Source: Girardia tigrina (lineage: Eukaryota). From it: a DNA stretch of 63,509 bases. The position numbers were made by a program, and so were the translations under genes. Positions 1,211-61,652 of this stretch are shown here, piece after piece. How positions within the stretch are numbered: position 1 is the first letter of the stretch; every line of letters starts with the position of its first letter. The notes beneath the pieces are model-generated. The model was not told the DNA's origin and made no database searches. It saw only the letters and a program-made list of their open reading frames with translations. The stretch covers positions 60,651 to 124,159 of the forward strand of contig MQRK01246158.1 in the NCBI GenBank assembly GCA_001938485.1, read 5' to 3'.

Positions 1211-1447
1211 AAAATTATAATCTCTGCTTGTGGGATGGTTGCTCTGGTAATTCTTTTGGTTTTGTTTATAAAATTAAGGAAAAAACGGTGAGTTATAATT
1301 ATTTTAAATATTAAATAAAATACAATGTCTTTTACTTTTAGGTTGAAGTCCTTGCCTGATACAAATAATTATTATTCACAATGTACAGTCGGTACAACAT
1401 TAATTGAGATTAAAGAAACTAACGATACTTATGAAAAAGTGAATTGA
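1211..1447 (+). CDS. LamG/EGF-like receptor family copy A: last two exons (TM + Tyr-motif tail); upstream exons not found in window
   Basis: Exon 1211-1287 (after cag, before GTGAG) encodes KIIISACGMVALVILLVLFIKLRKKR. A 54-nt phase-2 intron follows. Exon 1342-1447 encodes LKSLPDTNNYYSQCTVGTTLIEIKETNDTYEKVN*. Same phase-0 in / phase-2 out TM exon layout as copies B-D. Confidence 0.75.
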
Positions 1448-1529
1448 TTTTAGCAATAGATATTTTTTGTTGTTATTCAATTTTATATGATATTCCTTAA
1501 GAACTGTGTGTTTATTATCAAAAAATAAT

Positions 1530-1880
1530 ATTAGGTTTTCCAAAAAGTTTTAATACACAATATCAAAAAATATTTTGTTGCAACCTATTATTTAAAATAT
1601 AAAACTATTCATCAAAGTATAAGCCATTATTATCCACATCTATTTGCCATGAATATGATAGCTTAAGGATTTGCTCGAAGTACAAATCTGGCTTTTTTGA
1701 ATCAAAGAACGAGTCGCATCCTTCTCCGGCTGGAATATGAATTCTTTCAATGAAACGAAAGATATCATAATCCGATAGACTACACTCTGAAATATGGGGT
1801 GGAAACGATTGTAGATTGATGGACTTTTCCTTAACCTTCACCATCACATGTCTCTTTTGCAGCTTTTCTAGTTGGTAAGT
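1530..1880 (-). mobile_element. Degenerate mariner transposase C-terminus and right TIR
   Basis: ORF 1605-1847: PPHISECSLSDYDIFR corresponds to [16 protein letters not shown], and FFDSK..KL..WQ..VDNNGLYFDE is the mariner C-terminus. TA-TTAGGTT.. TIR-like end at ~1529. Confidence 0.7.
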
Positions 1881-2899
1881 TGTTCCTTCAGTAGTACCGG
1901 ATCAAAATTTGAAGCTCAATTTTGTCAATTTCCATCTTGTATTTTGTTTCGTACATATAAATAAGTAATGTACAAAATATAAAATCTATAAAAATATTAA
2001 TTATTACTAAGTATTAGTATTAGTTTTTTGTAACAGAATGTATTTTTTTCTATGATGTATTATGACTTGACAAACTTAATAATAATATAATTATAACAGT
2101 TTAAATTTTCATGTCGTTAATTAAGATTGTGCTCAATTAAAAAGGAATAATTCTCATTATTTAAAAAAATGTATAACCAAACAAAATTAAACATTTAATT
2201 AAAATAAGTTCTTTATCAAAGTAATCGAAAACAAAATCGACAATAAACAAATTAATAATAAACAAAAGTTAAATCAATATAAAAGTATTCATTTAAAAAC
2301 ATGATGTTTAAATTAAATTAAAAACATAAATTTAAATTTATTAATTATATATAAATTACTTATTATAAATTTTATACCCAAATATTTAAGCTACATTTAT
2401 TCATTAATGTACTTGTCTTAAAGGCATACAAAGTCACAAAGTTTGAACATGAAATAACATCGTCGATTCCACTAATTGCTTCAACATCATTGAACCATGC
2501 TCGTTGACGCTCTTCCAAATGAAGCGATCTGTTCAGTGTTTGACTCATCACATCTCTTATTATTAATGTTCACTGTGAGGATCTGGCACACTCTGAAAAT
2601 TTTTGTATATTTGGAATAAGAAAATATCTAAAATCAAAAGTTTTAAAAAGAATATATTTAAAAATATCTCTAATAAATTAAAAAAAATAATTCTCAAAAA
2701 TAATTTAATGAAATTTTATTTGCTAAAAATGTAAGTTTGAAATTCTTTGTTAAATACTTGATTTTTAAAAGTACTTGATTCTTTTTAAAAAAAATAAAGT
2801 TTTGCGTTTTAATGAATTCCATTCTTGATCAAGAACTCAACATGGCAAGACAATATCAAATGTTTTATAGCGGCTTGCTCAAGGTATTCTAAAGTAGCT

Positions 2900-5950: not shown

Positions 5951-8900
5951 ATGACATTTTTATTATTTTGGGATTTATTGAGAAATGGTAAAATTTATTA
6001 TTTTTAATTAATATTAATTAATATATTTAAAAAAAATGACTTAGAAAAATTTTTCGAATAATCATGATTAAAAATAAAAATAAGAAAACAAATTAGAAGG
6101 ATGACAAACGACGAAAGACTTTCTGAGAGTCATAATGATTCAAAATGTGAGTGTAATAAAAGTTTAAACGAGACTTTTCTAAATGTTCTAAATAACTTGG
6201 ATGAAGCATTCTTTAAAAAAAGAATATTTCACGACGTCCGCCTTAAATTATATTAGAATCCAGAGATATAACTAAAAATAAATGTAAATAATAATAAATG
6301 GAAATACATATTCCAACAATGCAATGACTAATGATAAACAGGCTAATAAACAACAATAATCTACAGAACGTATTTGATAAACAACTTCACACACGATTTT
6401 ATAACAATAAACGATTAATAAATCATATTTTCGCAATAACTTTATGAATTATTTATTATTTTTAACACTTGCGCTAAGTACGTCTTTTTTATATTTGATA
6501 AAATTCTTATAATAAAAACAATATTAATAATATATTAACGAATAAATATAATTTTATCCTTATTATATATATATAATCATATTATTATATTTTTAAATAT
6601 TAAATATTTAATTGAATGTTTTAATTTTAATTTCAGTTTTCATAAAATTATTTAATTCTTCGCCTGAAAATTATGTTTATAAAGATTTCGATGGACACTT
6701 CACAGTCATGGGAGATATAAATTTCACAGTCTATATTAAATCTTTCAAGGGGTTGATCTTATACTGCTTTGAGAGGAACAAAAAGTTGGTTATTGAACTT
6801 GATAACAACAATAATCAAAGTACAATTGTAATAAAACTTAATAATTTATTTTTTACAACATCATTGAAAAATGTATCTTCAAGTAAATTTGTATCATGAG
6901 TCTACAGGAATATTAGTTTGTAACACAGACGATTGTATGGTTGGATCATATATGAAGCTCACATTTATTTTACAACTGAACCGATCAGAAGTTCTAATTA
7001 TTTGCAATAGAAGATCAAATATACTGAAAATCAGCAATAATATTAATTCAAGTAAAATTTCTGTATATTTATGTTTAAAATCACACAAAAATTATTTTTT
7101 GTAAATATTTGATTAGAAAAAAATAATCAAAATATAATACATTATTGATAACATTATTGTTTTCTAGAAAGTCAACCTGACCTTTATACATTAATCTTTC
7201 TGAAATGTATAGACATTGAATCTGGAGGAAATTATATGAGTGAAAGCTTAGATTTGATAGAAATATAAAAAATAATAAATATTTCTATTTTAAGCTCAAT
7301 TATTTTTCTTTACATTACAGTACATTATTACATCAGGAGATGGTCACTGTCTCGTAGATTAAAATGCAAAAAAAAACTATTATTTCTAGTTAGCAACAAT
7401 GGAAATATAAAAGGAATTGAATATTATCATACGACTATTGTTGAGTCTTGTAAACGCAAACTTGATATTTTTGAAAAATACTTTTGTTAAAGTTTCTTTA
7501 AGAAATTGGGTATTGATCATGTCTCGAATTTCCTCTTTCATCATCAGCAATTATAATGTAATATGCAAGATAATCAGATGTAAATTAACGGGAAATCGTA
7601 TCAGTAAATATAATTTTTTTAAGAATTTTTTTTGAATTTTAATTGCAAAATTTTTTTTTACTTTAATTAAAGATTTTATGAGTTGAGACTTTGCCAATTT
7701 TAAATATTAATTCATGAGTAATTAGTACTTAATTAATTAGTGCTTAATCACACAATAGTCTCTGATAATGTGAATCAAAGTCCTTCTGCAAAATAGAAAA
7801 TTCATTATTTGAAATAGAATAGATTCTAATTTAAAAAAATATTTTTGTTTAAATATTGACATATTTTGTAAATGTATTTTGGCTAATAAAATTTTCTTTC
7901 AACAAATAAGTGTTCTCTATTAATTTCTAATGATTGATTTTTACTGCGACTTGATGATTCCGCAAAACGGTCGCCACTTCAGCAACCAATAATCAGGAAA
8001 ATCGATCAACCAATCGAGCAACCAATAAAAAAAGTTGATCAAATTGAATAGGAATGCTCACTAAACTGGGTTTTGAAATAACGATTTGTTTCTCCAATGT
8101 GAACCTCTCTCCTTCTTTCAGGTATTAAGACTATAGTCTTTAATGAAGGACCTGGGACACTGATGGGGCCTTCATATCACTTACCCAATATGTTTATCTA
8201 CATAGTACTGTTCCGCTGGGTAACTGGCATCACTGAAACACTGCTCATCAAGATTGATTCATCGAGACTCATTGTGTTGCTATTTTACTGTCGACTGCAG
8301 GGTCACTACTTCCTACAGCCTTCACATCAGATTTGCAGCTGGGCTTTCAAGTAAATGGTTGTTAGTCACGTTACGAATACGATCACTGTTGGTTTTTAAT
8401 TAGCGAACGGCAAAGCATCTGACACTTTAGCCTAGAGTCGAACTTTAGTTTACCAGGGACACCACTTGGAGATACCTATAGCTGGCTTGCACAGATTGCC
8501 TAAGCAACTGATCTCTTTCTCGAATATATGAATTTTAGACCAAAGAATATTAAACTTATAGACAGATTAGCTTGCAATGGTTACATCGTTTTCGATTTAT
8601 TTTAGATGAAGCTTTGAAATTTGTATGTCATTAAAAAAATTTTGGAACTACCTACATATGCTCTTCTTCAATGCTTAAAATCCTTTAGAATTTAGTATTT
8701 TGATTAATTGTATGGGCTTTTTAATGTTTTTTCCTTTATTTCTTTCTTTTACCGCATTTGTTTACATAATTTGTCTTATGTGTCCTTATGTTGTGAATAT
8801 ATCTGTTTGATTGTATACATAATGTCTTTCAAACTTCCCTTCAGAATATTATAACCATGGCCTGCAATTTCAACATTGGATTTCAATACTTCAGATTAGT

Positions 8901-11900
8901 GGGCATTTCCAATGGGGATAATTAAGGTTCTTGATCATGAGTTACAATATAAAAATAGAATCTCTTCTATTTCAAATGATGATTTTTCTGTTTTACTGAG
9001 AGATTTTGATTCACATTAAGAGAGACATTCTGTGAATCACTATTGATTCACTACATTTCATAATTAATAATTAGAATTTAAAAATTTTATAAATTTTATA
9101 TAATTAATATTAAAAAAAACGAAACATACAAACATATTAAACAATTTAAAAATAATAATTTAGCGCCGATGATAAAAAAATTTAATTAGTTTTCTTAAAA
9201 AAATATTCAACAATCGGATAATAAAACAGATGCCAAATAGAAGAGTTTCAGATTAAAGAGACTTGTCTCTTATCATTAAGTTATAAAAGAATAATTATCA
9301 GAAGAAGTTTGTAACCTTTGTGAGTGGTAAATTTATTCTTGAAGAATTCTTGAAAATTTTAAAATAAATAAACATTATTCAAATTTATTTTTGTTTTTTT
9401 AACCTTCAGAACAATTTGGATCATTTCCAATTCCGTTTTCTTATGATGAAAATAAGGATCAGTCATTTATCTGGATGGGAAATATTGGAAAATATATTGG
9501 GTATAATCAAATGATTTATTTACCTTTCAAAGACCATTTAGATGGTTGTTTGGATTCTTTCTACTTTAATGGACGTTTAATAAGCATAAAGAATAGAGGA
9601 AAAAGGTTTTTATCATCTTGTGATATTTTCTATCAAGAAACAGTGATTGGAAAAAATATTAAAAAATATCAAGCAGTTTCGTATAAAATGTTTGACTGTT
9701 CATTGGATTCATTGAATTGGAAATATTGTAAAAGTGGTGAGTTTCTGTAAATAAATATTAAAAAAGGTTAAGTTAAGTCATTGAAATACCATAAATATTG
9801 ATTTAAGGATTTATAGTTTTATAAAAGTTTTATCTAACTTTCTGTTGTTTTGGAAAAATAAATATTATTATTGTGAGGAATGTTCTGATTTTCTTGTTGT
9901 TTTATATTGTGCCTGTGTATGTTGATTTGGATTGTGTCTCTCCTACCAAAATGGCTGATTGGTATTTTTTTGATTCTTACTATTTAAAAATAATTTATTT
10001 TAATTTTTAAGTACAAATATTTAAAATATTTTTCAAGTGTAATATTTAATTTTTTATGTATTTAAAAATTTTAATTTCAAGCTTCCAGGAAAGCTTGGAT
10101 TCCCCGGACTATGATGTTCCTCAAATCGCCAGGAGAATGCCCATGGCGAAGAAGTAGATGGTTCTTTGGGCTGCCAACTTCGACGATCTTTATTCTTTCA
10201 ACTTAATGCCTAGCAATACCACGGTGACGTCACATGTGTACATAACATTCCTACAAGACGCCTTCAATTCATTTAACACCAACCAGCTGCGATAGCAAGA
10301 AAAGTCGTCTTATGGGAAAATGAAACGCTGATTCATGACAATGTGCTAGTCCATGTATTTAGGGCAACTACCACTTTTCTGGAGACAAAACGTTGCCATT
10401 GTCTTGACCAACCCCCATACTCTCCCGACACTAACATTTGCGACCGCCTCATATTCCCTCTCCTGAAAATGCGTCGCACAAATATCGTCTTCATTGATTC
10501 TCATTCCTTGATACCGTCCTAGAAGATTACAAGGAGAGTATGAGTAGTGAGATCATGAGACATGAGTTTGATAAACTGAAACTACTTCCAACTGATAATT
10601 CAGCATCACATTAATTTTGTGTAATTAAATTGTTGAATGTAATTGGTGCAAAGTTATTTCTCTATTATCTGGATTTGTAAAAACGACATTTTTTAAGGAC
10701 AATCTGTAGTTGAGACGTTTATTTTTAAAGTGGTCTAAATTCATTCAAAACTCAAATTGAGATATTCATTTCAAAGCAATGAAAGATAAACGTAATATGA
10801 AAACTTATGTAACCAAATTTTTTTTCTATTTGGAATATGTGTAAACAGTAATACTTTATATATAAATTACTTGAGGCTGTACATGTTAACACTGACAACC
10901 TGAAATAATTGAAATATTGACTTAGGCTATGTTAGAAGACAAAAGATCTGCACTAAAATATATTTAAATAAACTAAATCACAAACACACATACATCAGTT
11001 ATATACAGAATAAATGGAGAGTCAGAGGTTAACTCTGCTCTCGACCCCGTAATTGTTATATAATACAAATTTAGAATTATTCTACATTTGGTGATTGTGT
11101 AATATTTCATTTAATTAATTTAAATTTAATTCTATAATATCTCACAGGCTACTTTCAAAATAAACGGCACAAATAATAATTATTTATTGTTCTCGAATAC
11201 ATAATGCATTCTTAAACTCTTAGAATTGATTGATTATTCGAATCTGAAACATACTTATTCCTTTAATAATGATAACGAACGTATTCGCGTTATTAAATTA
11301 GAATGGAAACTAAATGACTTTGGAAATTCAGTCAAAAACGTGATGGATTATTGTATATTGGAAATGAGGATGAAGTGGAATTTGTTTATTATACGCCTTT
11401 TAAATAAATAACCCTTTTTGTAGCAATATTATTTTACAAGTTCAAATAACAAGGTTTAGCGACCTGATTGTTCGTTCTTTGGATATCGAATCAAACAAAT
11501 ATAATAACATATTAAACATAAAAATGTTATCGAAAGTGAACAATATTTTGTTGATTTATCCGACTAGTGAAAATATCACCTTTAAGGTAATTTAAAAAAA
11601 ATATTTTTAAACATTTTGTGTTTCATTTTGACTTATTTTAGATTTGTAATGGAAAAAGTTTGACGACATTTACCACTTTTTTCACAGAAGATATTAATTT
11701 GATCAACGTTGGATTCTTTCATCATTCGACAATGTGTCGCGAGTTCCAAGGAGAAATGAGTAAATACATATTATTAAATATTTTTTTTTAATTTATTTAT
11801 ATTCAGATATCAATTTCGACATCCTTTGTAGAAATTCCACAAGTCGTGCGATTACAATTATTTCAAAAAGTGTTCAACAATTTCCAAAGAGAAAAATACT

Positions 11901-14900
11901 GAAGATATCTGTAATGGTACAACTAATTTTGTTAAGTAGAACCTTCATAATAATAATAATAATAACAAAAATAAAAAGAAGAAGATTATTAGTAATAATC
12001 TTAGTCTGTTTTTTACTTATTCTAGTCTTGTAGTTTTATTCATTAGGTCTAATGTACATTGAGACCTTTAATATATTTAAATGGATTCGTCATCGATTTA
12101 AAGAATTAGTAATCATTTATAACAATAGAATCTACTTTAATATCATAAATAAAACAAATAATACCTTTATGAATGATGTTCGGAAATATATTTGAAAAAT
12201 TGACTAATATTTTACTGTTAAATAAAATAAAAATAATTTTCTTTGAAATAGTTTTTAAGATCCATAAATAAATATACATATAATTTTGATAAAATGCTTT
12301 ATTAATTGTGAAAATTACCTAGAGTTCGAATTTGGAACTAGAGGTTGTTTCCACTATCGGAATAAAATTAAATATGAAATAATATTTATAATATATGTAA
12401 TTTAAAATCAAAGATATAACAAGGGAAAAGAAGATAAAAAAACAAATCACAATAAAATAATGGCAGGTGATAATAATAAAAAAGTTACTTGGAATTGACG
12501 GGATCTGCCCTTGGATAATTAAGTTCTTTTAATTCGGATAGAGTGGTTTCACAAACTGACAATGACAACAATTTTTAGTTATTCGGATATAGTAATTTCA
12601 CAATCGGACGACGACAAAATTTTTCTATTATTCGGTTATAGTGGTTTCACAAACGGACAACGACCAAAATTTTCAGTTATTTGAATATAGCGATTTTTTG
12701 ATCGGACGACGACAATTTCTTCAATTGATAAAAAAATGATTGATAAAGAACGGTTAATTGCGAAATCACACAAAATACAAATTGTAAAAACAAAATAAAT
12801 GAAACATACGACAAACAGTCATAATCATCATAATTTCTATTTTTAAATCGATGATTAATGATTCATTTAATTTTTTAATTTTAATTCAAATTTTAACTTG
12901 ACTACTTTATGTAGTCAAGCAAAATATATATAATAATAATAATTAAAATAATACAGAATTTATACATTAATGAAACATTGGATGACACTAGCAGCACACC
13001 ATACAAGTATTGGGAAGTTTATTAATGTAATTAAGGATGATGGAAGCTAAAATGAACTCAGAATATCTCAGTAAAATGCAGGATTTTCAAGGCCCAGTTC
13101 AAATTTCAGTTTTGAAAGAATTAATTGCAGAATCAAGAGATTGTTTCGATGTTGTTTCAAAATTGTGATGAAATTTTGGTGAAAGTCATTTCGATAAAAG
13201 TAATACAAGCCGTAATACAACGTTTCGGGAAAAATGAGCTCATAAGGGAGCGCCTTTTTTAGAGAAAATAAATGCCATTTCGAGAGGCTCAATTCCTCTC
13301 GTCTTTCATCACCAATGGGGATATGAAATTGAAAACGTTTCCTGAAAAAATTGTGCCTACTTTGTTTTTGATTTCCTCGACATGATCAATTGAAATCAAT
13401 CGAATATTTCATGTGTTGCATTTCAAAAAAATGATCATTTTTAAAACCAACATTCAAATTGATCTGTTTTTATGATCTATAAAATTTATCAATAAAAAAC
13501 TCAAAATAAAGATCAGATTCGTTGAAATGTTAATCATTACGTTAATTTTATTTTAGTAATCATCATCAGAATTGATCAATGAATCTGATTAACTTCTCCA
13601 AGTCAAATCGAAATCTAATTGTTAAAAATACATTTATTTGAAAACACGCAATATTTTTATATCAAAAGTAAAAAACGAAAACAAATCTTCTGAAATGCTT
13701 TTTTTCTCATTCACAATACTCTATTCTATCCGGCTCCCGACTGCTCAATTTTCGTAATCACTTCTAATCGAAGGCCCCGCTCTGTCGTTGGCCCGTCCTC
13801 TGAAAGTTGGCCAGTTCTCCGGTTCGCAACCAGAGTGTAAGGGCACGCTTGTTCACTAGTAGTTTCCGCTGGTTTCGGAAACTGTGCTTACTCGAAAGAT
13901 TAAAATAAAATAAACGATCAAGTGTCGACCAAAATCAAGAACGAGAACTAAGTTTGATTCGCTGAAGACATTATATTAATTTCCAAAAGAAATAACGATC
14001 GTATTTGTTTATTAACATTTATTAGTTCCAATTATACACTTATTTGTGTCATCTTGTTTGTAACGTTTAAACAAGCGTCTTTATTCGAAATATTTTAAAT
14101 ATTATTATAAAATCCTTGTAATTGTTCTAACAGAATCGTTTATAATATTAATCAAGGTTCCTGGATATTTGATGTATGTGAGTAAATTTCTCAAATTAAC
14201 CGTTAAAAAGACTTCTTGCATTGGAATTACTTCTTCATCGTAGCACTTCTTTCCATGAGAAAATTACTGTTTTCTATGGCCGTAATTAAATTCTTATGAA
14301 AGTCTTTGATAAGGCAGAGAATCTTGTCGGTTAGGTTGAATCTTGTTAAGCAAGCCAATTGAACTTTCGCAGGACAAGTGCATAATTTTATATCTATGGA
14401 GATTGTTGGAGTTACTTTTGGTGAACTTTAAATTTTTGATATTTTTTAAAAATCATATTTATATTTTAGATAAATTAAAAATAATGTTCGACTAATTAAA
14501 ATGAAGTAAGTTTTGTAAAAATTTTAGAGTAATGATAATATTTTAATTAAATTAAGACAAATTTTTATAAAAATTAAGTTTTAAAAATTCACAATTAAAA
14601 TATCATCTTCGAAGTTAAAGAATATTGAAAGAAGATTTTGATATATTTTGTAACATTATTTAAAATAAAATTAGAATTTTATTGTACACGGAAAGTTTTA
14701 TTAAAAAAATAATTTAAAATGTAATGATTTAAAATTAAAAAAAATTATTTAGGAATTGAATTTTTTACAGGATATGCCATTAAAATATTTCTAAAGATCT
14801 AAATTTCTAAACATTGTAAAAAAATAATTAAACAGAAACAAAATAAGATTTATGCAACATTAAGAACACCAATTTGATTTTTTATATTTTTATTTAAACA

Positions 14901-15227
14901 ACAATTTTGATTGTCCTCAAGACAATCTTTATCAAAACTTTCGTACATTTGCATTCAAAGCGAAATTGATTAATGGTTTAATTCTCATTACTTTTTTAGA
15001 AAATGGGGAACTAAATATTTAAATAAGATATTCACTCAAAACTTATTGGATAATAATTAAAATGATAATTAATTATTTAAAAAATATTACTTTGATTTAT
15101 TTATTAAATATTATAAAAATTATATTATTTAAATTATATTATATTATATTATATTATTTATATTATTTAACTTATTTAAAATTTTAAAATTATATGGAAT
15201 TAAAAATAAATTTAAACAATAAATTTA

Positions 15228-15270
<43 letters not shown>

Positions 15271-36369: not shown

Positions 36370-36403
<34 letters not shown>

Positions 36404-36822
36404 CTCGATATGGTGAGAGTATTAGATAAATTCATTCTCGTTGATCTTCTTTCACCGTTACATTCCGTTATTACTTCTCCTCGGATCAGTTTCAATATCA
36501 CTCTCAAATAAATGTTCTCACAAATTGAGCATTTACCTTAAACATATTATTTTATATTCAGTTAGAAAAATTATTCCCTTACACATTTCCTTACTGGTTC
36601 GACGAATAGAAATACGTTTTGTTTTAAAATCGATAATCTTTTGTCCGTCTTCTTCCTCAAACTCAATCACAAATCGATTCTCCATCGACTCGAAACCATA
36701 AAATAATATTCCAGTAAAATTTTGAACAAATATCGAAAAATTTAAGGGATATTTTTGAAACAGACTTCCGTTTAGTTCTTTAAAGATGTAACTCGTGGAT
36801 CCATAATGAATTAATTGTGACA
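25515..36822 (-). CDS. LamG-EGF-like-LamG single-pass receptor, copy C (10 exons found; signal-peptide exon not identified)
   Basis: Exons 36822-36583, 36536-36405, 33626-33297, 33201-33069, 33018-32856, 32803-32686, 32637-32570, 30012-29942 (TM QNIIICIGAAGIVCTIIILLFKIR), 29893-29801, 25608-25515 (GKSEFNEMEDCNSYDEYSVTNEYAKIVDIY*). All phases are consistent and match copies B and D. Confidence 0.8.
26690..27400. mobile_element. hAT-type subterminal GAGTCG repeats and an adjacent Tc1-like remnant
   Basis: ggagtcggagtcg..ggagtcgg..gactccgcagccttg end motif at 26695-26775, followed by degraded transposase-like coding sequence. Confidence 0.4.
27995..29241 (+). mobile_element. Full-length mariner (gap inside), in the last intron of copy C
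   Basis: Perfect 29-bp TIRs TTAGGGTGAGTCATAAGTTGTGGGGCACT with TA on both sides. Transposase starts at ATG 28181 and is frameshifted. C-terminal ORF 28805-29167 has QQDNASPH and [13 protein letters not shown]. Confidence 0.97.
30400..30850 (-). mobile_element. Penelope-like element 3' end (GIY-YIG endonuclease plus 3' UTR)
   Basis: [23 protein letters not shown] and NFKIL..WERVMYEALLIKSFDPKINVQ. Confidence 0.85.
30457..30497 (-). ncRNA. Hammerhead ribozyme core (minimal type I, PLE-associated, weak stem I)
   Basis: Minus strand reads GT-CTGATGA-T-GACG(CTTGATC)CGTC-GAAA-TTAA-TC-AC, about 70 nt after the GIY-YIG stop. Confidence 0.65.
32100..32320 (-). mobile_element. Third degraded Penelope GIY-YIG remnant
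   Basis: DNA similar to 51380-51510 (aattcaagaacat...aaaaaatgtaaatgtgat.ttaa.attgataatttc). Confidence 0.6.
33740..36040 (+). mobile_element. Unclassified degraded element (coiled-coil ORF pieces, wHTH-like end, GC-rich 3' motif)
   Basis: Broken long ORF at 33742-35230. YKSPSSGNPKHVFE at ~35565-35605 and the gctgcgcccgctctc 3' motif are shared with the 16.2-16.8-kb element. Confidence 0.5.
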
Positions 36823-48600: not shown

Positions 48601-51600
48601 CAATAATTCATCTCCCCATGATTCTTGAGAATCTAGCTCATTTAAAGAGACATAATCGCAATAATCCGTATAAGTGTTCGAGTTTATTAATTTTCATGTT
48701 TTGCTGTGGATAATCATTCAAATCATATAGGTTTTAGTTTGGTAACGTTACACAGAGTCATTTTTCCTGTTGGGATTGAAAATTTGATTCTACTGACTCT
48801 CTTAGATTACTCCTTCTACCCTTCTCTTATCACACTGCTGAGCCTGGTTAGATTTCAACCAGACTTTATCAACTTCCTTAAAACTTTGATAATAAAATGT
48901 CTTCGACATTGTCATCGTTTGTGGAACCAACTGACCTCAATTGAATTTGATAACTTTAAAGAATCTTACAGGAGGTTGTGAAAACAAGTTAACAAGATTA
49001 ATCATCATATGTCTATCTATGAAATCATCTTTGTCAATAAACAGAATAAAAACAATAATAATTGTAATAAAAATATTATATTAATACTATTAACAACTAG
49101 AAGCTGAAAGAATAAAAATAAGATTTATATTATTATCAAGATACAAAAAAGGAAAAAAAGAGGGAAGATGTAATTAAAATAATTAGTTAATTTTATTAGT
49201 TGTAGTTAATTGAGCCAAGGAGGATAACAGTAGGAAATTATGTTCTTTAGTTAAAAAAATAAGAATGTCTTTATTGAATGAAATTTGTATTTGAATAAGT
49301 ATTTCTTTTGATACAGACGGAAGTTAATATCAGATTGTTGATTTAGTTTGTCTATTTTTACTTATTCGAACGCCAACAATAATATATTGTAATTGCAATT
49401 AATGATGATTATTTCTGTTGGGAGGATATATTATTTGTTTTTAAATTAATTATAAAAATTTGATATTCGTCTTCTCCTTTTGTCCTTCACAAATACTTGT
49501 ATGCATGCGTCTTTCAGATCCGACATCGCGTAATTCTCAGACTTCTTCATCCACCGCGGAAGCTTTTCACACAGGCCGCCCTACTACCACTGTAAACATT
49601 GACATATTTATTGATGTTACTTAAATAAAAAACAGGTCAAACTTTATTTTTATTTGTTCTCACTGCCGAAAAAATAGGGATTGTTCAATTACGAGGCTCT
49701 AATTTACATTCATCATACAAAATTAAAAATCGGTTTTCAATCCACTGCTCCATCACTTCTTCAAATTTGTCTTCCGATGAAACAACAATATTGTAATAGT
49801 TACACTGATAATCAAAATTTGGAATCCTCTCTAATTTACAATTTATATTTCAATTTTCATGCTTTGTTATATGACACCACGAAGTTCTTTCCTGTTACAT
49901 TCATAAAGTCAACATTTGTTGTATCAAGAAATTCTAACGAAATTCAAATTTCTGTCAATCGTTACACCTCCAAAATTTCGAATCACATCTAGACAAGAAT
50001 GAATTTATAACCCGTCCATCAGACCTGCCGTAGAACATTTGTTATTCAGAATCATGACCTCAAGTACAACTTATTGAGCTATAAGTCTATTGTCATACAT
50101 CATGGTTATTGTCCTGTCTAATTTCACTTGATGTTTAGCAATTATAATAGTAAACGCTGTGGAATCAGTAATAGAAATAACTCATTGATGAAAATGATTT
50201 TAAGATTTGACTAGGCTCAGTTGTACATCTGGACTCTACTGCAAATTACTCCCATTCAAGTTTCTAAAACAGTACATCTTTACAAGAAGTACATCTAAAC
50301 ATGTGTCTACATTAGTTTGCGATATGACACATAGCAAAAATCTTAAAAACATCACATAATATTTCTTTCAAAGTAATAGAGAGCTACTATAACTATTCAT
50401 ATAACACTTGCACCTTTTTAAAGACTTTACGTTTCCAAATATTAACAAGACAACATCTTCTTGCAATGTAAATTTTGTTAAAACCATCACAATCTAATCG
50501 CCGGCCTTTTATTTTTACCAAACTTCTCACTAACCCGTTAATATCCGCGCAACATTCGTCTGCAGTTTTTTTTTCTCTGAGATAAAAGTTGAAGCATTTA
50601 TCAAGAACTTCAACAGATACGCGAAAATAATGGGATTTTCAGAGGAAAGGAAAATCCTTTTAGTAACGCCATGCTTGACTCCGGAGGCAATCATGATATT
50701 TTTAATAATGATATTTTTACTTTACATTTTAATTTTTAATTTACTTTTTTTAAATTTTCAAATTAAAAAAAATAATAAACTATTTTGGTGAAAGGCAAAT
50801 TTAAACTAACCCCTCATAATATCAAATCGCGTTCACCATACTTTGATCGAGATCAGCCTTCATCAAATTTAAGAATAAGGACTAATAATGTTTTGATGTC
50901 CAGAAAGCTTGTTCTAACGAAATAACAAAAAAGATAACATGATAAGAGGCTTAATTTCTCCTTCTTTGTCGTTGTCCTCAACTTTTGTTAAATCTGTAGA
51001 AAGTGTTAACAAACTAAGTTCTTCGTTAAATCAGAATGGTTATTCTAAATTTTTTCTTGAAAAATTTATAAAGGCAATAGTCGTTAAAATACTTTTTTTT
51101 TAGAAATCAGAGTTTTGCTTCTTTTCATGGATCTAAGAAAGGAATCCAGGTATTATTAGATATTAGCAATATACCTAAATATTACTTAATTACACTTTAT
51201 TCTGAAGGATTTTAAAAGTTTAAAAATGCATTGTTACAAGTAACTAATAATGAATTAAATTTAAAAATTATTTCACGATCTCATAAAATTCAAAATATGT
51301 TCAATAATAAATCTATGACACCTTTAACACTTTGTTCTGATATTGTTTATGAATAAAAATATAGTGGGTGCGATGCCACATACATACAGAGACTGCCCGT
51401 AATCTCTGTAAACGAATTCAAGAACATAGTCGAAAGAAGAGTAACAATTAGATTGTGAAACATAAGAAAAAAATGTAAATGTGATCTTAATATTGATAAT
51501 TTCAAAATTCTGTGTAAGCATTTTGATAGTTATTGGGAGAGAGTGTCGTGTGAAGCATTGTTAATTAGGTCACGTTGCCCTAAAATCAATGTTCAATCGG

Positions 51601-54600
51601 CAGTCTCAACCAGCTTATTGAGAATTTTTGATTAGCACCAATTCATGCAATCGATTACATAATCATCATTTTTGTATTTATATACAGGTGAATTGATTAT
51701 TAATTAGTGACCTGAAGATGACGGTAGATCCGTCGAAATATATTGTTAGAAAATATTTTTTAAATGGATGAATTTTGTTCTTCATAACCAACTCTCATCC
51801 GGATTTAAATTTATCAATAAAGATAATATGTTAATAATATTTCATTAAATAACATAACTTCATAACAGCATCCCAGAATATTAATTGCTCTGGAGAGTTC
51901 TCAATTAAATCAATTGAAGTTACACAATAATCAACTTGTATGATTTCATTAATAATTATACATTTATTTTTGCACATTCAATTTTCGAGAAAATAATATC
52001 TTTTTAATTATTATCAAATGACTACTCACAATTTTAAAATGATAATTTGTTTTATGCACATTATTTTCCTGAGTTTTATTTAGATTCGTTTTAATGACGA
52101 CTGACTCTCGAATATTTGATTCATATCTGAAATCTTTGATCGAATAATAAATATTATTGTATTACAAATATTTACTGATTCTTCCTTCAAATATTCCACA
52201 AATAACATTTGACTGTTGAAAGAATCCAATATTTATTATTGTGATATTTTCCGTGAATGAATCAAAGATGTAGGTCTTTATATTTTCCCCATTGAATATC
52301 TGCATCAAATATCCATTATCATCTACCATCATCGATTTACCTTCACATTCCAGTCAGAATTATTCGTAATCTCAATCAATAAAATATTCAGTTTATTCGG
52401 TATTATATTTATTTTCAATTTAGTGTCGTATTTGTTTGATCCTCTTCCGTATGAACTCATGCTCAAGTTATAATATTGAGAAATACTGAACAACAATATC
52501 GAATTATCACTAAAGTTATAACATATTTATCACTCATTATTCTCTTTATTTATAAATTAACCTCAATAATAATTCCATCAAACAATAATATAGTGATCTG
52601 TTATACGATAGAATCTTCCATTCCAATCTCACAATTCGTATTGATTCAGTATCGGTATTGATCTCAAATGTGCGCCGTTGTGATTTGTAATCGAACAATT
52701 CTGATCGATACCGGTATCGATCAATCAATCAATATCTCATATAAATACTCACCATGATCACAATATCTCCCATTCAATGAATACAATGAACAATCATTTA
52801 TTCTGTAACTGATAGATCCATTTGTCCATGAACCATTTTTGTATCTATTCTCTTGATATTTGATGTCGCAAGTCGAAAGGAAATGTTTTCCACTATGATC
52901 CATCGTAATCAAGTCTCCACTGTAATAGAACTTATCTAAGCAACCTTCTGTTGATTCATTTTGGGTTAAATATTTCATTCCCTTGTATCCGACATAAAAC
53001 CCGATATTCGCCATCCAGATAAACAATTTGTGTGGATAGAGATTGTAGTTCTTCGGTATGGGATAATTAGCAAACTGATCTGCACAAATAATTATCAAAT
53101 AATAAAATATTATTCATGAATAATATTATCAAGAATTAAATATTATTGCATAACAATGGAAAAATATTTTAATTAAAAGTTTTTAGTATTGAATTGACCT
53201 TACTTTGCCAAATCAGAATGTTAATTGATGGGTTCTAGTATCTCTCTTTGATGTGGGCCTCCCATCTAATTCGAATGGTATTGAGCCTCTAGGCTCTTTA
53301 GAGGGTCCGCCCAAATTAAAGAATCACTAACAGCCCCCCAATAGGCCTCCTACGATTTCGGATAGTTTCAGTCTCTGAGATCTTTTCGGCTTCCCTGTGA
53401 AAAACGACCACCCATGGCTTGTATAGCTATGGTTCTGCATACCTTTGACTGTATTCGTTGACTTCGTACAGCCGCGAAAGGGACATCAGAACTCCCGCTT
53501 GCAGTTAGATCTGAAATCCTAAAAGTGTTTCTTCAGTATCTTTCGCTTCCTCCACCGCCGTCGTGATAGTTCATCACGGATTGAATCTGGTTGCCTTGAA
53601 TGTTGAGGTTTTCTACGATTCTTTCTTCTGTGTTATTTGTTGTACTGGTTTGCGCTGATATAATTGTCGGTTCTCCAATTTCTTCTCTCTCATCCAGTTT
53701 ATCATTCATGTGAGGGATAATTTGGAATGTTGTAAGTTTTTTGTTTGTTGTTTGTTGTTTGTTGTGTTGTTTGAAGAAAACCAAAAAAAACAAACGTACG
53801 TAAATACTTATTTCGTCTGCGTATCACACGTAACTTTAGAGAATCAAATGCCACACCAAATAAAGTACTTTTATTAAATGCTTAAACAAAAGTTTTATCA
53901 ACCATTCTCATAGTGAGTTGCCCATCATTCGAAAAGTATATAAATTATATTTATATAAATTATAATAATAATAAATTTATTTAAAAAATTATGTAATGTT
54001 TTTTTGATCCAATAAAATTATGAAAAATTAAAATTTAATATTAAAGTTTCCCATTCATTATTTTTTAGATTTGAATACTTTAACAAAAAACTATATCAAT
54101 CGAAGAAAGATGACCTCTGAAAATTGTTGTGAAGAATCTGTTTGTGTTGTCAATAAATGTTTACATTCAAATTGTGATGTTGTTAATAATCCCGGTAGAG
54201 GTGCATGGTCAGGCATCTCTTCATTTTGTACGACTTTTATATAGTGTACATGAGAATGGTAATTGCCTTTATTGTGTCTCGTTGGGTTGTTTAGGATTAG
54301 AGGAAGCGGACAAGTGTGGTCATTTCTTATGTATCTATTCATCTCCTTCTTTTCGGCAAACACCTTGTAGAATCTTTCTACTGGACATTGTTGACGTTTG
54401 TCTCTCTCGTTGATAAGCTTCGACACAGTTTTCCTTGACCTATTGAGTCTTTCTGATCGAATTAAGGAGTTTATGTATGTTTCCCTTGATACAGTAGGGT
54501 CTCTGTAAATGATTTGGTTAATGAAATCTCCATATACCGCATTATCCTTAAATATCCACTGTATGTCCACTCGAAGACATTCCCAGATTGATTACTTCTT

Positions 54601-57600
54601 TCTTCCATTGATCTTTTTCCGCATCTGTTTTTCTCCCCTCCATATTTGATTGTCTCATACTCCTCTGAAGTTTCCGTCTTACAGTTAGAAGTAAGCCTTT
54701 TACTAGTGATAATATTCAGGGGATGGGGGAGTCCAATGTCCAGGATATACATTTAGATCTTTTCAATCTTGTGTTTCTTCGGAACTATGCACGTGCATAG
54801 GTTATGAAGGGCATCCAACTTTTTAATGTTCTTTCACAGCCATACTAGACTACGGAGAATATTCATGCGTTCATAACTTTATTCTTATTCCTCATACTCA
54901 GTTTGAGCTCTTCTGGGTTTCTTTCTTGATTCTTTCCTCCACTTTCGCGTCCATATTTCCTGCTGAAGAGATCGTGGATCCTAAGTAACAAAAGCTAGAG
55001 ACCCACTCAATACCTGCCTCAAGCTGGTGCCCAGCAGTTACGTGCTACAAATGCAATAAAACTTGGTATATAACGAGATTTTGAAGAACAATAATATGTT
55101 ATGAATGCGCCGGAAATCACAAAAAACTCACTTTCTGAACCTTTACACTGTGAAGGTGATGCAGGAAAAAGAACTATCAGATACTAAGAACATTAACTCT
55201 ACATCTCATTCTTCAAGATCAAAGAATATGTAGTTTAAGGCAATTTCAAAATCTAAACCAGAAAAACGGGATTTGACCAAACAGTATGTTGATTATATCA
55301 ATGGTATGGCTAAAAAGCCTAAAAGTCAACTATACAAAAGTTACTGATGAAAATTCCGACACTCTATCAAGATTGGGTTATTGTGAATAATGCACTCTAA
55401 ATCATAAAGAACCACTGAAAAGATGAAGTGTTCAAGTTTTCAAAGATAGTTCAAGCAATTCAAGCATTGAAAAACTATAAATTATTTAAAAATGATGACA
55501 ATCAATTTAAAGATCTTGTAATTGTATGAATGATTAAAATGATTGCAAAAAGTATAACCATAAACGAAGTATCTACGGAAATCAAAGAAGATAAATGTTT
55601 TAAAAAATATTTGCAAGTTTATCAGATCTAACACTACGATTTGACTTACTTTATTTACTAGACAATGACATTTACATACTAGTTATTTCAAAGTCTCCTA
55701 GATATATTATTATTCAAAAAATGCACGAAGGTCTGGGACATAGATATAAAGAGAACCACAGTTGCATTGAAAAATCACACTACTGCCCACGTATAGATCT
55801 ATAATTAAATTATTATGGGAACAATGGATATCAAATTATGGAAAACTAGAGCGTATACATTCAGATAAGGGTTCTTATTTTGTTTCTGTTGAATTTAAAA
55901 CCTTTTATTTTTCGATAAATATTAATCAAACTCAAAGCCCACCGTATTATCCCAAACAAATGGACTAATTGTACGAGTTTTTCGAACAGCTAAAGAAATG
56001 ATAAATACTTCTATGTATTCTCGTAACACACGAGATTGGACAGATGTTCTTACAATTGTCTGAAACGAATTGCGATGTACAACACAGAAAACCATGGGGT
56101 ATAGCCTTTTGAAATAGATTATGGAAGAAAACCGTCATTACTAATTTTTTATGGAAGAAACGAGGGCAGAAGAACAGAAATGAATATGTATCATCATTAA
56201 AAAACACGCAACAATAGCTGAATAAATTAGTCACAGATAATATAAAAATAATTTGAAGAATTCAAGTAATCTTTATAATAGAGAAATGTAGTTTACCAAG
56301 TTCAGAGTTGAAAACAAAGTGTTAATAAAGAAGCTGGGAAAAGAGAAGATTAGGGAAAATAAAATACGTCGGATTATTTACTATAAAGAAAATAAATAAT
56401 GATTTGACTTATGAATTATTGGAAAAAGTATCTCACAAGCTCGTGAAAAGAAATTACAATCAAGTTAAAAGATATAAAGGAAGATTAAGTATTCCTTGTG
56501 ATGGGAAATCAAGTGTATCATCCAGCTGCGTCGCAAAAACGATGGGGAAGGAAAACAGATATGCAGTATAAAGTACAAGAAATCCAATTCCTAAATATCA
56601 GTGACCCCCGATTAAAATTTATGATAATATATTTTAAAAATTAAAAAACTAAAAATATTTAAAAACAATATATATTTGTTTAAATAATATTTTATATAAT
56701 AAATATTAATCTTGTTAGACTTTTATTGACTTTATAATTATTCAGATATATACAACAAATATATACCATGGTGAAAAACCAATGTTGTACAAGAGATATT
56801 TAGATGATGTCTTTTGGTTTTCAGAAATCAATCCCTCATAGAATCATTTCTAACATTTATGAATGGTCTTCATCCTAATATTAAATTTTTCAAAGAATAA
56901 GAAGTAAATAAACTTCCTTTTTTGGACATTCTTGTCACTAGGAGGAATGGAGGTTAAAAAACTGAATTATTCAGAAAGGCAGTGGATATATGTCTTTGCA
57001 CAACAACTGATGGTGGTCGACAAAGTAGTTGCCAGTCTGAAAGCGATGTCGAAATTGGTGACGACACCCGAGGATATCGCGCAAGTCTCGAATATTTCTA
57101 CGAACGAGTACAGATTGATCGGTGATTTGATATCGGATGCGATCAAGAAGGTCGGGAAGGACGGTAAAACGCTGCACGGTGAACTCGAAATGAAAAAGAA
57201 AATTAAGAAGCCGCTCGTGCTGAAACAACTAATGTTCCGGCTGCAGGTGTGTGCGATAAAGTTTTAGATAATTTTTTTAATAATAAAACTTGTAATTAAA
57301 TAGATTTTAAAACGAATAAAATAAGATCTGAAAAATAGTTATCCTGTGATCCATCAATTGCTCAAAATTAAGAGTCAAAACCATTTGCATCGTAAGCCTT
57401 ATATAAAACGCACATTTCCTGATCATATATTTTTAATTCCTCAAAAGAATTTTACTATATCTTTAAAAGCGTGTCTGAATTTAGCCCAACATCATAAACT
57501 CTCGCATTCTTCTTGTACAGGCTATTGTCTTAAAATTCGTTCACGATTCTTCAAATTTTAGAATGACTGCTAACAATGTTCTAATGTCCATGTTGTCGTA

Positions 57601-60600
57601 TAGCTTTGCAGCAACGGATTAACAAAAAGAAATATCTAATTAATAGTTATTTATCAAACATCGAATTTTATAGAAACCGTCAATCTGAGATTCTTAAAAC
57701 ATGGTTTTAATTTAAAGAAACAAAATTAAACATTAGGATTTTTTAAAGAAATTACCTGATAAAACAATAGAACTAATCATTAAGATTTTTGAATAGGAAT
57801 TACATTTTAAAGTAACTTGTGATCGGTTCAGTTGGAGCATGAATGTCAGATACATGTATGATCCGATCAGACAATTTGCTGAATTTCAAATAATCATCAT
57901 ATATAAGTCCAATAATTGTTTACATAAATTTATCTTTTCCAATGTCGATGAAGCTAAAAAGTTATTTAGTTTTATTTGAACTGTTTTCATTCTGTTTATT
58001 TCTTTTAGATAGATCGAAAATTTATAATCCTTTTCGAAACTGTACAAAAGAATTCCGCACCAATTTTTGATATAAACAGAGAAATTCAATCCGGAATTAT
58101 TGACGATACTTCCGTTGAGCTCTTTGTAGACGAAATTATCTTTTGACTCGGTCCAGTTATACAAAATTTTTAAAACTAATATTAAATATAAGTACCAATA
58201 AATATATTTATGTATTAAAGATAAACGTCATAATTTATTACTTAAGATTGATCATTGATGATCATCGAATATTTAATAACGTATTTATAAAATGAGGTTT
58301 TTCCTAAAAAATATTTAAATATTGATAAACTAATTTTCATCATGGAAATGGAAAACTTTATTTTAACAATGAGATTTATAAAGGTAGATAAAAACTTAAT
58401 TGAAGCCATGTGCACAGAGTACACATTACAGGAAAGAGAAGGTTAAACGCATTTGAAAATCTGTAACATTATGTAAAGTTCAGTTAGAACAAAATGAATG
58501 AAAATTGTGAGGTAATTTTATAATCATTAAATCTATTTAATTATAAGTTCCATTTTATTTAAAACATTTATTTTTAAATATTATTAATATTGAAACTTAG
58601 ACGTTTCCAGGAATTTTATATTACATTTCTATTTCTTACTTTTAAAATTTAATGTTAATTTAAAATGTTTTTATCTTTACGTAGAATTAGACGTATTATT
58701 TGTCACGTTGTTTGAAAGTAAAATTAAAATTGTTATTGTAATATTCACGATTTATCGAACGTTTTAAAATTATATTTTGATCGTGGAAATAAATCATTAT
58801 TTGCCGTTGCTGGAATTACAAGCTATTTGGGGGAAATACGAATCGAAAATGTTAATTGCCCTTTTCCCTGATACGACGGAATGTCGACTCCAATTAGAGC
58901 AGCGATTCCCAAACTGGGGTATGCGTATCCCTAGGGGTACTCGAAAGGTTACTTAGGGGTACTCAAAAAAAGTATTATTGCGGAAAATGCAATTCAAATC
59001 TAGCCTAAAAACTCAAAAGTATTATTAAACACATTGCAAATGGTATTTTCTTATATTTAAATTAAATAATAGGAAATAGTACCGTATACTGATGTTTAAA
59101 CACATATATAAGGGCAAAATACTAGTCTATTAAGTACAAAATCGTATACGATCACTCTTAATGAGGTGTTTGCTTCTGATATATGATTGGTGGACAGGAA
59201 GCCGTGTCTCCACGATATTTTGGTAGGAGAAGAAATGTTTGTCGATTCATCTTCTAAAATACTCAGAGAATCAGCGGGGCTATTAAGAATTCGTGTGTGA
59301 GAAATGTGACACGCAGCAAATTCTGATTCCGGTCGCGAATCAATAATCAATACATTCTCATTCTGTTTGATACATTTGTGGAATTCTTCCACGTTAACGA
59401 ATTCCTTCACGACATTATTGAAGTCTTTCACTGGCTCTTTTTTTATTTCTCTTTGTTTATCGAGCTCATATCGCGTTTGTAAACTATCTTTTAACTTTTC
59501 TACTTTCTCAAATGCCTGATTAACTTTCTCGGAATCGCACATCACGTTAATGAATTTTGTATCGCTTTTAAATGACTTTTTAACTTCAGAAAGCATCGTC
59601 AGGAATCTCATAACATAGATGTACACTATTTCCTCATCTTTTTTTAGAAGAGATTTTTCATATTGCTCATAAAGTTTCGACAATGTTACACATGTCTTCA
59701 TGATACTGACAGTAACATATTTTGAGATTTCAGACTTTTTCTCAAGTTCTTTGAAGTTTTAACATAAATAAACTGGTTTTTTATCTTTTTTTTATTTATA
59801 GTTAGATAAGACGAAATTCAGCAGTTCTCAAATATTTATTAATTGTTTTAATTGTGACAAAGTCACGTACACATTTTTTAAAAAAAAGCAAACACACACA
59901 CAACAAACACACATTCATCCAATTACAATTCACTTTCTTTTCTTTACAAACATGCATTCACCCAATCGACTTAACACACACCACACAACACACAATCCAG
60001 ACATTCAATCAAAATTCCAAAAAAATAAAATGAGGCTCACCATTAATTTAATCACATTGTGATTACATAATTTGACTTCATTTAGTAATCGATCGACTAT
60101 CACGAATATTTTTTTCTTTAAAAATTCAACAATTTCAATAAAGGAATTTTACAAAATTCGACAATTAAAAAAAACTCAAAAGACATTCTTTAATTTAATT
60201 GTTTTAATTTAGTTATTTTATTTATTTAATTTATTTACTTAATTTTAAATAGATTTATTTAAATATTTTAATTTATTTAATTTATTAATTTATTTATATT
60301 TTTTTTATTTATGAATTTCTGAAACTGGCAAAAAATATTCGGTCAAATTGGCAATTTTCCGCTCCTATTGGTCATCTGAAATTACTAAATCATTTCATTT
60401 TTGTATATATTTATATATATATATATATATATACATATACCTTGAAAGTTTCTGTTTTAATAAGTAATCATAGTTATAATTTGTTATTTATTGTCTCGAA
60501 TCGGGTGTTTAATTTTTCAAATTCTGAAATTTTTTATTTTTTAAACAAACCCTAACCCTAACTCTAACCCTAACCCTTAATCTAAACCCGACCCCGAACC

Positions 60601-60707
60601 CTAACCCGTAACACGATTTTTGCCACAAAAAAATAAATTAATTTAATTATCTTCTTACAATGGTAAGTAAATAATATGAGAATTACGCAGATGAAACATT
60701 TGGGTTT

Positions 60708-60746
<39 letters not shown>

Positions 60747-61652
60747 TAGGGGTGCCCACTAAGTAAACAATCAGGTAGAGGGGCACTCTAATGAAACAAA
60801 GTTGGGAACCGCTGAATTAGAGAATGGAGAACGAAGTTTGAAATAATTGCCGCATGTCAGGGAATTTCCGATCCTAAAGAGTTAGCTAAAATCTAGCCCT
60901 TATTCCTCGAGAGAGAGCGGGATTCACGATCAACGAAAATATCAATGAGAAGCAGAGGAGCTATTAGGAAGTAACGTCACTTTTAATTAAATCGTTTGAT
61001 GTAGATGAGTTCGGCGTATTTGAGCAGCTGTTAGGAACTTTTTGGTCATCTAAATTTAGAGTGGGAGAAAAAGTTTGGGTGAAACCAAATCAGATCCAGC
61101 GTTGTAGTGAAAGATGGAAAGAATGAGTCATCAAAGAAGTCCTGTTCAACTTTTTGTCTTTATCAGAAACGTCGATTCATTGTATCATGTCGCCGATACT
61201 TCTGATAATTCTGATACTTCTCAGAGATTCTCATTCACTTAAACTAAATAGGAAAGTATAACGAATACATTAAAGAAGTCTTAAGTAATAATTTTGCTGT
61301 TTCTCTAAATATAAAACTTTTTAAACTTTTTATTTTTATTTAAAATTATATTTAATAATGATCATATGAAAGAAAGTTTAAAACGAAAGACTCAACTTAA
61401 TTTTTCTATTATACCCTTCCATATTTTACGCCATAATGTTTAAAAGTCTTTTACGCTCGAATCGACAAAATTTCTCAAGAATCCGTCATCAGTTCTAATT
61501 AAACATATTTTTAATATCTAACTAATTTAATTAATTATTTATATTTTAAATTAATGAAATCTCTTATGATGATAAAATGTTAGAAAAAAATAGTTAAATA
61601 TCAAAATAAAATTACCTGAAAATATCAAATAAATAATGAATTTGTTCAACAT
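45690..61652 (-). CDS. LamG-EGF-like-LamG single-pass receptor, copy D (11 exons, ~518 aa)
   Basis: Exons 61652-61616 ([12 protein letters not shown], signal-like), 58175-57924, 57878-57756, 53079-52753, 52700-52562, 52509-52341, 52299-52176, 52133-52030, 47020-46941 ([25 protein letters not shown]), 46894-46787, 45783-45690 (..[13 protein letters not shown]). Total 1557 nt, open frame. Confidence 0.8.
47196..48463 (+). mobile_element. Full-length 1268-bp mariner, defective (mellifera-like TIRs), in an intron of copy D
   Basis: TIRs TTGGGTTGGCCAAAAAAGTCATTGCG / CGCAATGACTTTTTGGTCAACCCAA with TA TSD. Motifs RSGRP, WLPHEL, TCDEKW, HDNARPH and YSPDLAPSD. Several stops and frameshifts. Confidence 0.98.
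51330..51800 (+). mobile_element. Penelope-like element 3' end (GIY-YIG plus 3' UTR)
   Basis: [19 protein letters not shown] and [39 protein letters not shown]. Same family as the 30.4-30.8-kb copy. Confidence 0.85.
51708..51748 (+). ncRNA. Hammerhead ribozyme (minimal type I, PLE-associated)
   Basis: TGAC-CTGAAGA-T-GACGG(TAGAT)CCGTC-GAAA-TATA-TT-GTTA: intact core, 5-bp stem II, stem I UGAC/GUUA and palindromic stem III. Confidence 0.75.
53220..54960 (-). mobile_element. NeSL/R2-like non-LTR retrotransposon 5' remnants
   Basis: C2H2-like [21 protein letters not shown] near 53420-53490. ORF 54091-54570 has an ERLNRSRK...CP segment resembling the pre-RT region. Confidence 0.4.
54990..56610 (+). 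mobile_element. Ty3/gypsy remnant (zinc knuckle plus integrase)
   Basis: VTCYKCNK knuckle, [12 protein letters not shown] and SPPYYP.TNGLI integrase-core motifs, and an [16 protein letters not shown]-terminal motif. Confidence 0.8.
56760..56945 (+). mobile_element. Penelope-like RT remnant
   Basis: YKRYLDDVF and [21 protein letters not shown]. Confidence 0.8.
57005..57267 (+). pseudogene. HSPD1: HSP60 (chaperonin 60) fragment with internal deletions
   Basis: [26 protein letters not shown]...[28 protein letters not shown] and LQVCAIK match mitochondrial Cpn60 segments in order, with intervening parts deleted. Confidence 0.85.
59250..59787 (-). pseudogene. USP8: USP8/UBPY N-terminal fragment (MIT-like dimerisation domain plus start of rhodanese domain)
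   Basis: [41 protein letters not shown] and [17 protein letters not shown] correspond to USP8 LYL..LKDLNKK, RDEERAYVLYMKY, LSESLKLRYE and LIIMDARR. One in-frame stop; no catalytic domain. Confidence 0.85.
60548..60612. repeat. Degenerate (CCCTAA)n telomere-like array
   Basis: About 10 imperfect CCCTAA units inside the hAT element. Confidence 0.8.
60830..61260 (+). mobile_element. LTR-retrotransposon integrase C-terminal remnant
   Basis: [25 protein letters not shown] homologue lies on - at ~48800-48900 ([20 protein letters not shown]). Confidence 0.6.

Follow-up and report, generated by a model that had tools for sequence, protein, structure and literature searches.

Variable receptor arrays are known on immunoglobulin (Ig), lectin, leucine-rich repeat, and fibrinogen scaffolds. 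In the KIR, Siglec, and SIRP clusters of paired immune receptors in vertebrates, similar ectodomains sit on different tails and similar tails under different ectodomains, an arrangement maintained by gene conversion. The Alr family of Hydractinia, whose members average 24% identity, also shuffles domains (bioRxiv 10.1101/2022.03.04.482883). We did not find an array of neurexin-type LamG domains described. For planarians, conventional neurexins are listed in Schmidtea (PMC6453901 supplements), and the single-pass protein PHRED-1 of Schmidtea mediterranea, called a divergent neurexin, has 2536 amino acids (aa), 6 LamG and 9 EGF domains, and an intracellular WD40 part, and is conserved across lophotrochozoans (bioRxiv 10.1101/131789). 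Here we analyze the final 63.5 kb of a 124-kb contig of Girardia tigrina (GenBank assembly GCA_001938485.1, contig MQRK01246158.1, positions 60,651 to 124,159 of the forward strand; all 63,509 nucleotides are called the window), which holds three near-complete genes, B, C, and D, and the 3' end of a fourth, A, from a family of putative LamG receptors. Our results point to a lineage-restricted flatworm multigene family, expanded in tandem to dozens of members, whose distal LamG domain, EGF-LamG2 module, and cytoplasmic tail have been reshuffled among paralogs by recombination.

Gene structure and relationship to neurexins

Six-frame self-comparison of the window, which has about 28% G+C and includes introns of 40 to 55 nucleotides (nt), found one exon of 327 to 330 nt (the big exon) three times, with expectation values (E) of 6e-34 for B against D and 8e-29 for B against C, far beyond chance. 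Script-based splicing by window coordinates yields 10 exons for B and 11 each for C and D, all introns being GT-AG with zero internal stops (Table 1), and the predicted proteins are 28 to 38% identical to one another; the joined models were used for frames and identities and once inside the local profile that located exons in fetched loci. A preliminary description of this DNA, spliced by hand, had reported the same set of three near-complete paralogs and one 3' end, and its open frames were confirmed, as were the intron phases common to B, C, and D (1,1,1,1,2,0,1,0,2, with an extra final 2 in C and D). Its matched exon sizes also stood (327/330/327, 163/163/169, 123/123, 104/104, and 94/94 nt), except for a 37/37 pair, the signal-peptide exons having 34 (B), 31 (C), and 37 nt (D). 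Four of the junctions that it listed, all in D, are borne out by RNA contigs, which skip exactly the predicted introns 46894/46941, 47020/52030 (the 5,009-nt intron linking ectodomain to membrane exon), 52133/52176, and 52509/52562. These joints end CT..AC at the predicted sites and are present in runs from two studies, classed as RNA by automated guess; the comparison covered 46720-52710, part of D only, with the last junction of D lying outside. Farther upstream, this contig also holds the ectodomain exons of A, which were recently duplicated from those of B (synonymous divergence, dS, of 0.1 to 0.2 in most exons), and we infer that they join the 3' end of A across assembly gaps.

The architecture of the family is best explained as that of type I membrane proteins with a signal peptide, a LamG domain, an eroded EGF, a second beta-sandwich that is probably also LamG, a short stalk, one membrane helix, and a tail. 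Pfam gave zero matches above cut-off for the family genes and was uninformative for single exons. When a big-exon profile was built from 20 paralogs, its sole match among solved structures was neurexin-1-alpha (E 9e-5; E 2e-7 with database homologs added). This match covers the disulfide partner and the EGF as well as the final strands of LamG, in agreement with the neurexin-type LamG-EGF junction read earlier. Evidence for the fold of domain 1 comes from a database homolog, P0003, rather than from the B, C, and D proteins themselves. This homolog is 33 to 37% identical to all three, and its residues 18-246, in an alignment with exons of the window and of paralogs, gave an AlphaFold model with a predicted local distance difference test score (pLDDT) of 82 and a predicted template modeling score of 0.79. 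Foldseek matched the model to LG domains of agrin, laminin, neurexin, pikachurin, and SHBG (E 2e-5), and VIA-align gave Z 11.3 with laminin-511 over 144 residues and Z 10.6 with neurexin L2-L3. Judged by this homolog, domain 1 is a LamG jelly-roll beta-sandwich; what points specifically to neurexin is the EGF junction, the LamG fold alone being too general.

Domain 2 (about 150 aa) is probably LamG as well. In a comparison of language-model features the top matches were LamG for both halves (0.94 for domain 1 and 0.90 for domain 2), and the top ten for domain 2 all belonged to the LamG clan. At its start, a weak profile match aligns it with the opening strands of a neurexin LNS, and its structure model is all-beta (pLDDT 39, from homolog P0001) with no structural match.

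Of the six EGF-spacing cysteines, B and D retain two and C four, and only the basal paralogs L043 and L048 have all six, suggesting that the EGF was eroded stepwise from six cysteines through the C type with four to the two of B and D. The EGF of the preliminary description is therefore a remnant, and its junction aligns with the neurexin-1-alpha EGF; in the P0003 model the region forms a long hairpin. The two cysteines missing from C-type paralogs (window 33297-33420) are apparently the first and the fourth. A canonical EGF does not pair these two with each other, so a new disulfide may now link the second and third. The spacer formed by the EGF remnant and domain 2 carries 7 to 14 N-glycosylation sequons.

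The family resembles neurexin-1-alpha (LNS5-EGF3-LNS6, PDB 3asi) and Caspr/Neurexin-IV in its LamG-EGF-(LamG)-membrane order, in its LamG jelly-roll fold, and in a GC-strand, disulfide partner, and EGF end that align by profile. In contrast to these proteins, with which it is less than 15% identical, it has a single unit in 484 to 518 aa instead of the three LNS-EGF-LNS repeats of alpha-neurexins or the one LNS of beta-neurexins, an EGF reduced to two to four cysteines, and dozens of rapidly changing paralogs where they have one to five conserved genes; it also has neither a 4.1 nor a PDZ motif. Unlike Caspr/Neurexin-IV, it has neither a discoidin nor a fibrinogen domain, for which the models leave no room since the signal exon joins LamG1 directly. 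PHRED-1 likewise comes from a planarian, spans the membrane once, and combines LamG with EGF domains; we rejected membership because the family has a single unit and tails of 40 to 73 residues, as opposed to many LamG and EGF domains and WD40. The family belongs to the LamG superfamily but lies outside neurexins, Caspr/Neurexin-IV, and PHRED-1, and it is best explained as the offshoot of a single LamG-EGF-LamG unit from a gene of the neurexin superfamily.

This ancestry also suits a different role, in which the proteins form an internal adhesion or cell-identity code, with neurons, epidermal cells, or muscle cells expressing different members that bind partners on their neighbors, in the manner of neurexins or clustered protocadherins, and with the tail tyrosines serving trafficking or adaptors. 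One LamG-EGF protein of planarians, PHRED-1, acts in patterning muscle (bioRxiv 10.1101/131789). Several subfamilies, moreover, are of sufficient age to include proteins of another organism, and selection is purifying on average. Wiring codes, however, are usually stable in number, whereas here we see recent blooms, partial exon duplicates, and swaps. The 4.1 and PDZ anchors are gone, and the neurexin calcium-ligand position, presumably occupied in neurexins by an acidic residue, aspartate, on the hypervariable surface, aligns with K, R, or Q in a weak hidden Markov model alignment. We regard such a code as doubtful.

A mosaic, lineage-restricted family

The big exon has 93 matches throughout the 1.43-Gb assembly (255,254 contigs), 92 of them without a stop, and clustering of the 38 full copies that we fetched leaves 34 groups at 97% protein identity or 26 at 90%, far more than the four genes reported at first. 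In a tree, which is midpoint-rooted and has long branches, C falls within a well-supported bloom of 12 copies from its own genome and D within one of 9, B groups with A, and a conventional neurexin-type fragment falls together with the members that keep six cysteines. Database proteins join at deeper, weakly supported nodes, so that no described gene stands as a one-to-one ortholog. The genome matches and the tree together uphold the claim of a lineage-specific tandem expansion. Conventional LamG genes are separate loci elsewhere in the genome.

Among 1.84 billion representatives we found only 16 credible homologs, all of them unnamed UniParc, ENA, or Logan records that may derive from other planarians; word-indexed searches returned only the queries themselves, and one match, P0017, was false and was dropped. 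A literature search, in which subscription journals were poorly covered, yielded no paper describing the family, and six of its conserved words are absent from planarian matrisome tables. Being invisible to Pfam, these genes have escaped the catalogues built from domains for a major regeneration model. One of the homologs, P0016, has a long unrelated N-terminal part, then the LamG end and EGF remnant, with a membrane helix almost directly after, no domain 2, and a two-tyrosine tail; this may reflect an erroneous gene model or a shorter architecture. Within each of the paralogs L013, L015, L022, and L024, one to three exons are duplicated in tandem, possibly as alternative exons or decay. Upstream of D, at 61836-61867 on the reverse strand, an orphan piece resembling the end of a fifth exon with its donor site reads as a remnant of another paralog.

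The paralogs are uneven in their divergence, with blocks that are 96 to 99% identical, even in their introns, next to blocks of 60 to 70%. Between C and the gene that comes first on the contig, the opening 120 nt of the big exon contain 42 differences and the following 205 just 1. The same step was seen in eight other pairs, and breakpoints were significant in all nine (permutation, p<=0.005), these pairs being chosen by eye and not independent; synonymous divergence at the step falls from 0.35-0.63 to 0-0.06. A second block, that of D (Table 1), recurs in four other loci, which are only 64% like D at the LamG1 end and 60 to 67% in the stalk exon. Two genes upstream of the window share a 1.4-kb membrane-tail block at 98% identity beneath ectodomain exons that are 74 to 82% alike, with an assembly gap splitting the ectodomain and membrane-tail halves of the second gene. 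Near copies of the ectodomain blocks of A, C, and D exist, unlike their membrane-tail DNA, for which a genome-wide search, insensitive for A+T-rich DNA, returned none; for that of B the same search gave only three, at 71%. Because synonymous divergence drops and the introns are as alike as the exons, we attribute the mosaic blocks to recombination and not to selection. Such a mosaic pattern is typical of recognition receptors.

Table 1. Family genes and shared blocks in the window (nt positions, position 1 being the first of the window)
Feature	Position	Strand	Length	Exons and remarks
Gene A, 3' end	1211..1447	+		Membrane exon 1211-1287; tail exon 1342-1447, ending in YEKV motif
Gene B	6444..18689	+	484 aa	6444-6477, 6637-6882, 6929-7051, 9410-9736, 11224-11374, 11424-11586, 11642-11759, 11807-11910, 18452-18522 (membrane), 18572-18689 (tail, YETI)
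Gene C	25515..38123	-	490 aa	38123-38093, 36822-36583, 36536-36405, 33626-33297, 33201-33069, 33018-32856, 32803-32686, 32637-32570, 30012-29942 (membrane), 29893-29801, 25608-25515 (tail end, NEYAKI)
Gene D	45690..61652	-	518 aa	61652-61616, 58175-57924, 57878-57756, 53079-52753, 52700-52562, 52509-52341, 52299-52176, 52133-52030, 47020-46941 (membrane), 46894-46787, 45783-45690 (tail end, NVYTTV)
Recombination tract (C)	33297..33501	-	~205 nt	Last LamG1 strand and EGF remnant; C has 97-99.5% identity to five paralogs here, against 26-35% difference over the preceding 120 nt
Shared block of D	52133..52900	-		EGF remnant and domain 2; 93-99% (exons) and 85-100% (introns) identical in four other loci

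Mean ratios of nonsynonymous to synonymous divergence (dN/dS) of 0.38 to 0.51 indicate that the family is constrained, so that the dN/dS check proposed with the preliminary description gave values below 1. This bears on two further explanations. Proteins for gamete or mating recognition, acting on sperm, egg, yolk, or copulatory cells, diverge fast between species, and fast divergence with repeat homogenization is typical of reproductive recognition proteins; the confinement of the family to few organisms agrees with such a role. Positive selection on average is not seen, however, and dozens of paralogs with differing signaling tails fit a somatic repertoire better, leaving this explanation quite improbable. 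Alternatively, the expansion might be largely neutral in a genome rich in repeats, with haplotype contigs swelling the count and most copies redundant or dying, which might account for the identical scores on duplicate contigs, the partial exon copies, and the transposon-rich introns. Such a neutral bloom is nevertheless very improbable in our judgment, given the six intact family genes on this one contig (28 to 85% identical), the nearly stop-free exon matches, the dN/dS below 1, the loss of cysteines in pairs, and the splicing of D in at least two studies.

Tail motifs and proposed function

A pattern scan of seven tails found no 4.1-binding or PDZ motif. Each window tail has one YxxI/V, namely YEKV (A), YETI (B), YAKI (C), and YTTV (D), and the motif is also present in the two upstream genes (YRII) and in two of three database homologs; EYSxxNEYxxI is common to C and the upstream genes. 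By shuffling, YxxI/V is enriched (p 0.004 for four of four window tails, p 0.001 for six of seven including homologs), and so is NxY (p 0.0004), the motifs having been picked post hoc and the last exons of C and D chosen partly for containing them. Tyrosines with acidic or Asn neighbors act as Src-type sites and as ligands of SH2 domains, but YxxI/V doubles as a sorting signal.

We consider it an even bet that these proteins, to judge from sequence, are variable recognition receptors for foreign or altered surfaces that signal through phosphotyrosine and were cut from a neurexin-like module. The distal LamG, as the variable domain, would bind a surface protein or glycan and would be held away from the membrane by the heavily N-glycosylated EGF remnant and domain 2. 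Binding of ligand would cluster the receptors, a Src-type kinase would phosphorylate the tail tyrosines, and SH2 proteins would dock on the phosphorylated YxxI/V; we infer all of these steps from ligand binding to SH2 recruitment. Through duplication and ectopic recombination, binding domains would continually be joined to new tails, as happens in clusters of paired or variable receptors. The likeliest job may be the detection, at an epithelium or by phagocytes, of foreign or altered surfaces such as those of microbes, parasites, or non-self cells. A bolder proposal, which we make tentatively, is a planarian-own variable self/non-self system on the LamG fold, in which recombined distal LamGs and phosphotyrosine tails would govern microbe recognition or tolerance of foreign tissue and stem cells.

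Several points weigh against recognition receptors that signal by phosphotyrosine. None of the four window tails matches a strict immunoreceptor tyrosine-based inhibitory (ITIM), switch (ITSM), or activation (ITAM) motif, the only ITIM being in the database homolog P0001, so that the tyrosine-motif tails of the preliminary description hold for YxxI/V and for the loss of 4.1 and PDZ motifs but not for the strict forms. Tyrosine itself is not enriched (13 of 218 tail residues), the post hoc choice of motifs counts here, and YxxI/V fits an AP-2 sorting signal as well. Average positive selection is missing, duplicate contigs inflate the copy number, and, of the two LamG sandwiches expected, the first stands on the P0003 fold (Z 10 to 11) while domain 2 has no support from its structure model or from profile searches, which were blank.

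The comparison with Alr made in the preliminary description stands for clustered, very divergent single-pass receptors that escape domain searches, for domain shuffling, and for tyrosine motifs in the tails. Differences are that Alr proteins have Ig and fibronectin folds instead of LamG, that their tails carry formal ITAMs and ITIMs, strict forms of which are absent from A to D, and that Alr1 and Alr2 have proven allelic polymorphism and function. The KIR, Siglec, and SIRP clusters are similar in mixing ectodomain and tail independently and differ in fold and in that neither a strict ITIM nor a charged membrane residue was seen in the receptors of the window. A strict allorecognition complex, with one or a few highly polymorphic, homophilic self markers deciding graft acceptance or stem-cell competition like Alr1/Alr2, would share the genomic profile of the Alr family (clustered, about 25 to 40% identical, exon shuffling, tyrosine tails; bioRxiv 10.1101/2022.03.04.482883). 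The D tail shows a single listed change in RNA contigs, which mix alleles and paralogs, and we consider such a complex unlikely. To our knowledge, moreover, solitary planarians do not fuse naturally, and we know of no described histocompatibility locus.

If the family does consist of variable recognition receptors, a conserved synaptic adhesion module would have been recast as a fast-evolving signaling receptor. Its members are candidates, testable by RNA interference, for planarian recognition of microbes or foreign cells, or for cell-identity labeling.

Assembly gaps, discarded exons, and mobile elements

None of the three assembly gaps in the window lies within an exon. The gap at 15271-15335 is inside intron 8 of B and adjoins an AT microsatellite; phase, strand, and the lack of another membrane exon lead us to link the ectodomain and membrane exons of B across this intron. 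The gap at 28364-28777 is inside the last intron of C, and its flanks are collinear halves of one mariner, whose anchors are 550 nt apart compared with 578 in an ungapped copy. The third, at 19819-19929, is intergenic between B and C.

Two candidate last exons were rejected. For C, the one at 29612 was discarded in favor of the exon at 25608, which has homologs upstream (38% identity to the last exon of two upstream paralogs). For D, the one at 46761, with an NPxY, was discarded because RNA depth in the first bin equals the coverage of 46787-46894 alone (expected 21.2, 5.9, and 8.6; seen 20.8, 5.85, and 8.52). In B, the exon at 11224-11374 has an alternative donor at 11383 that is likewise in phase.

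Within intron 1 of D, the element at 58892-60822 has terminal inverted repeats of 14 nt and a target duplication of 8 nt. It contains an intronless 220-codon N-terminal piece of USP8 at 59099-59758 on the reverse strand (Pfam USP8_dimer, E 1e-13, and the start of a rhodanese domain) and an AACCCT telomere-like run at 60548-60612, and by its sequence it reads as a hAT-type element with a captured gene piece. Broken mariner copies occupy 17434-18112, 47446-48465, and 28174-29164, two of them 90% alike, and GIY-YIG Penelope-like remnants lie in introns at 30381-30888, 32133-32513, and 51307-51830; the intronic remnants of both kinds are of very high copy in RNA contigs. Short non-coding tandem arrays are found at 12524-12715 and 23754-23988, with units of 49 nt and 98 nt.

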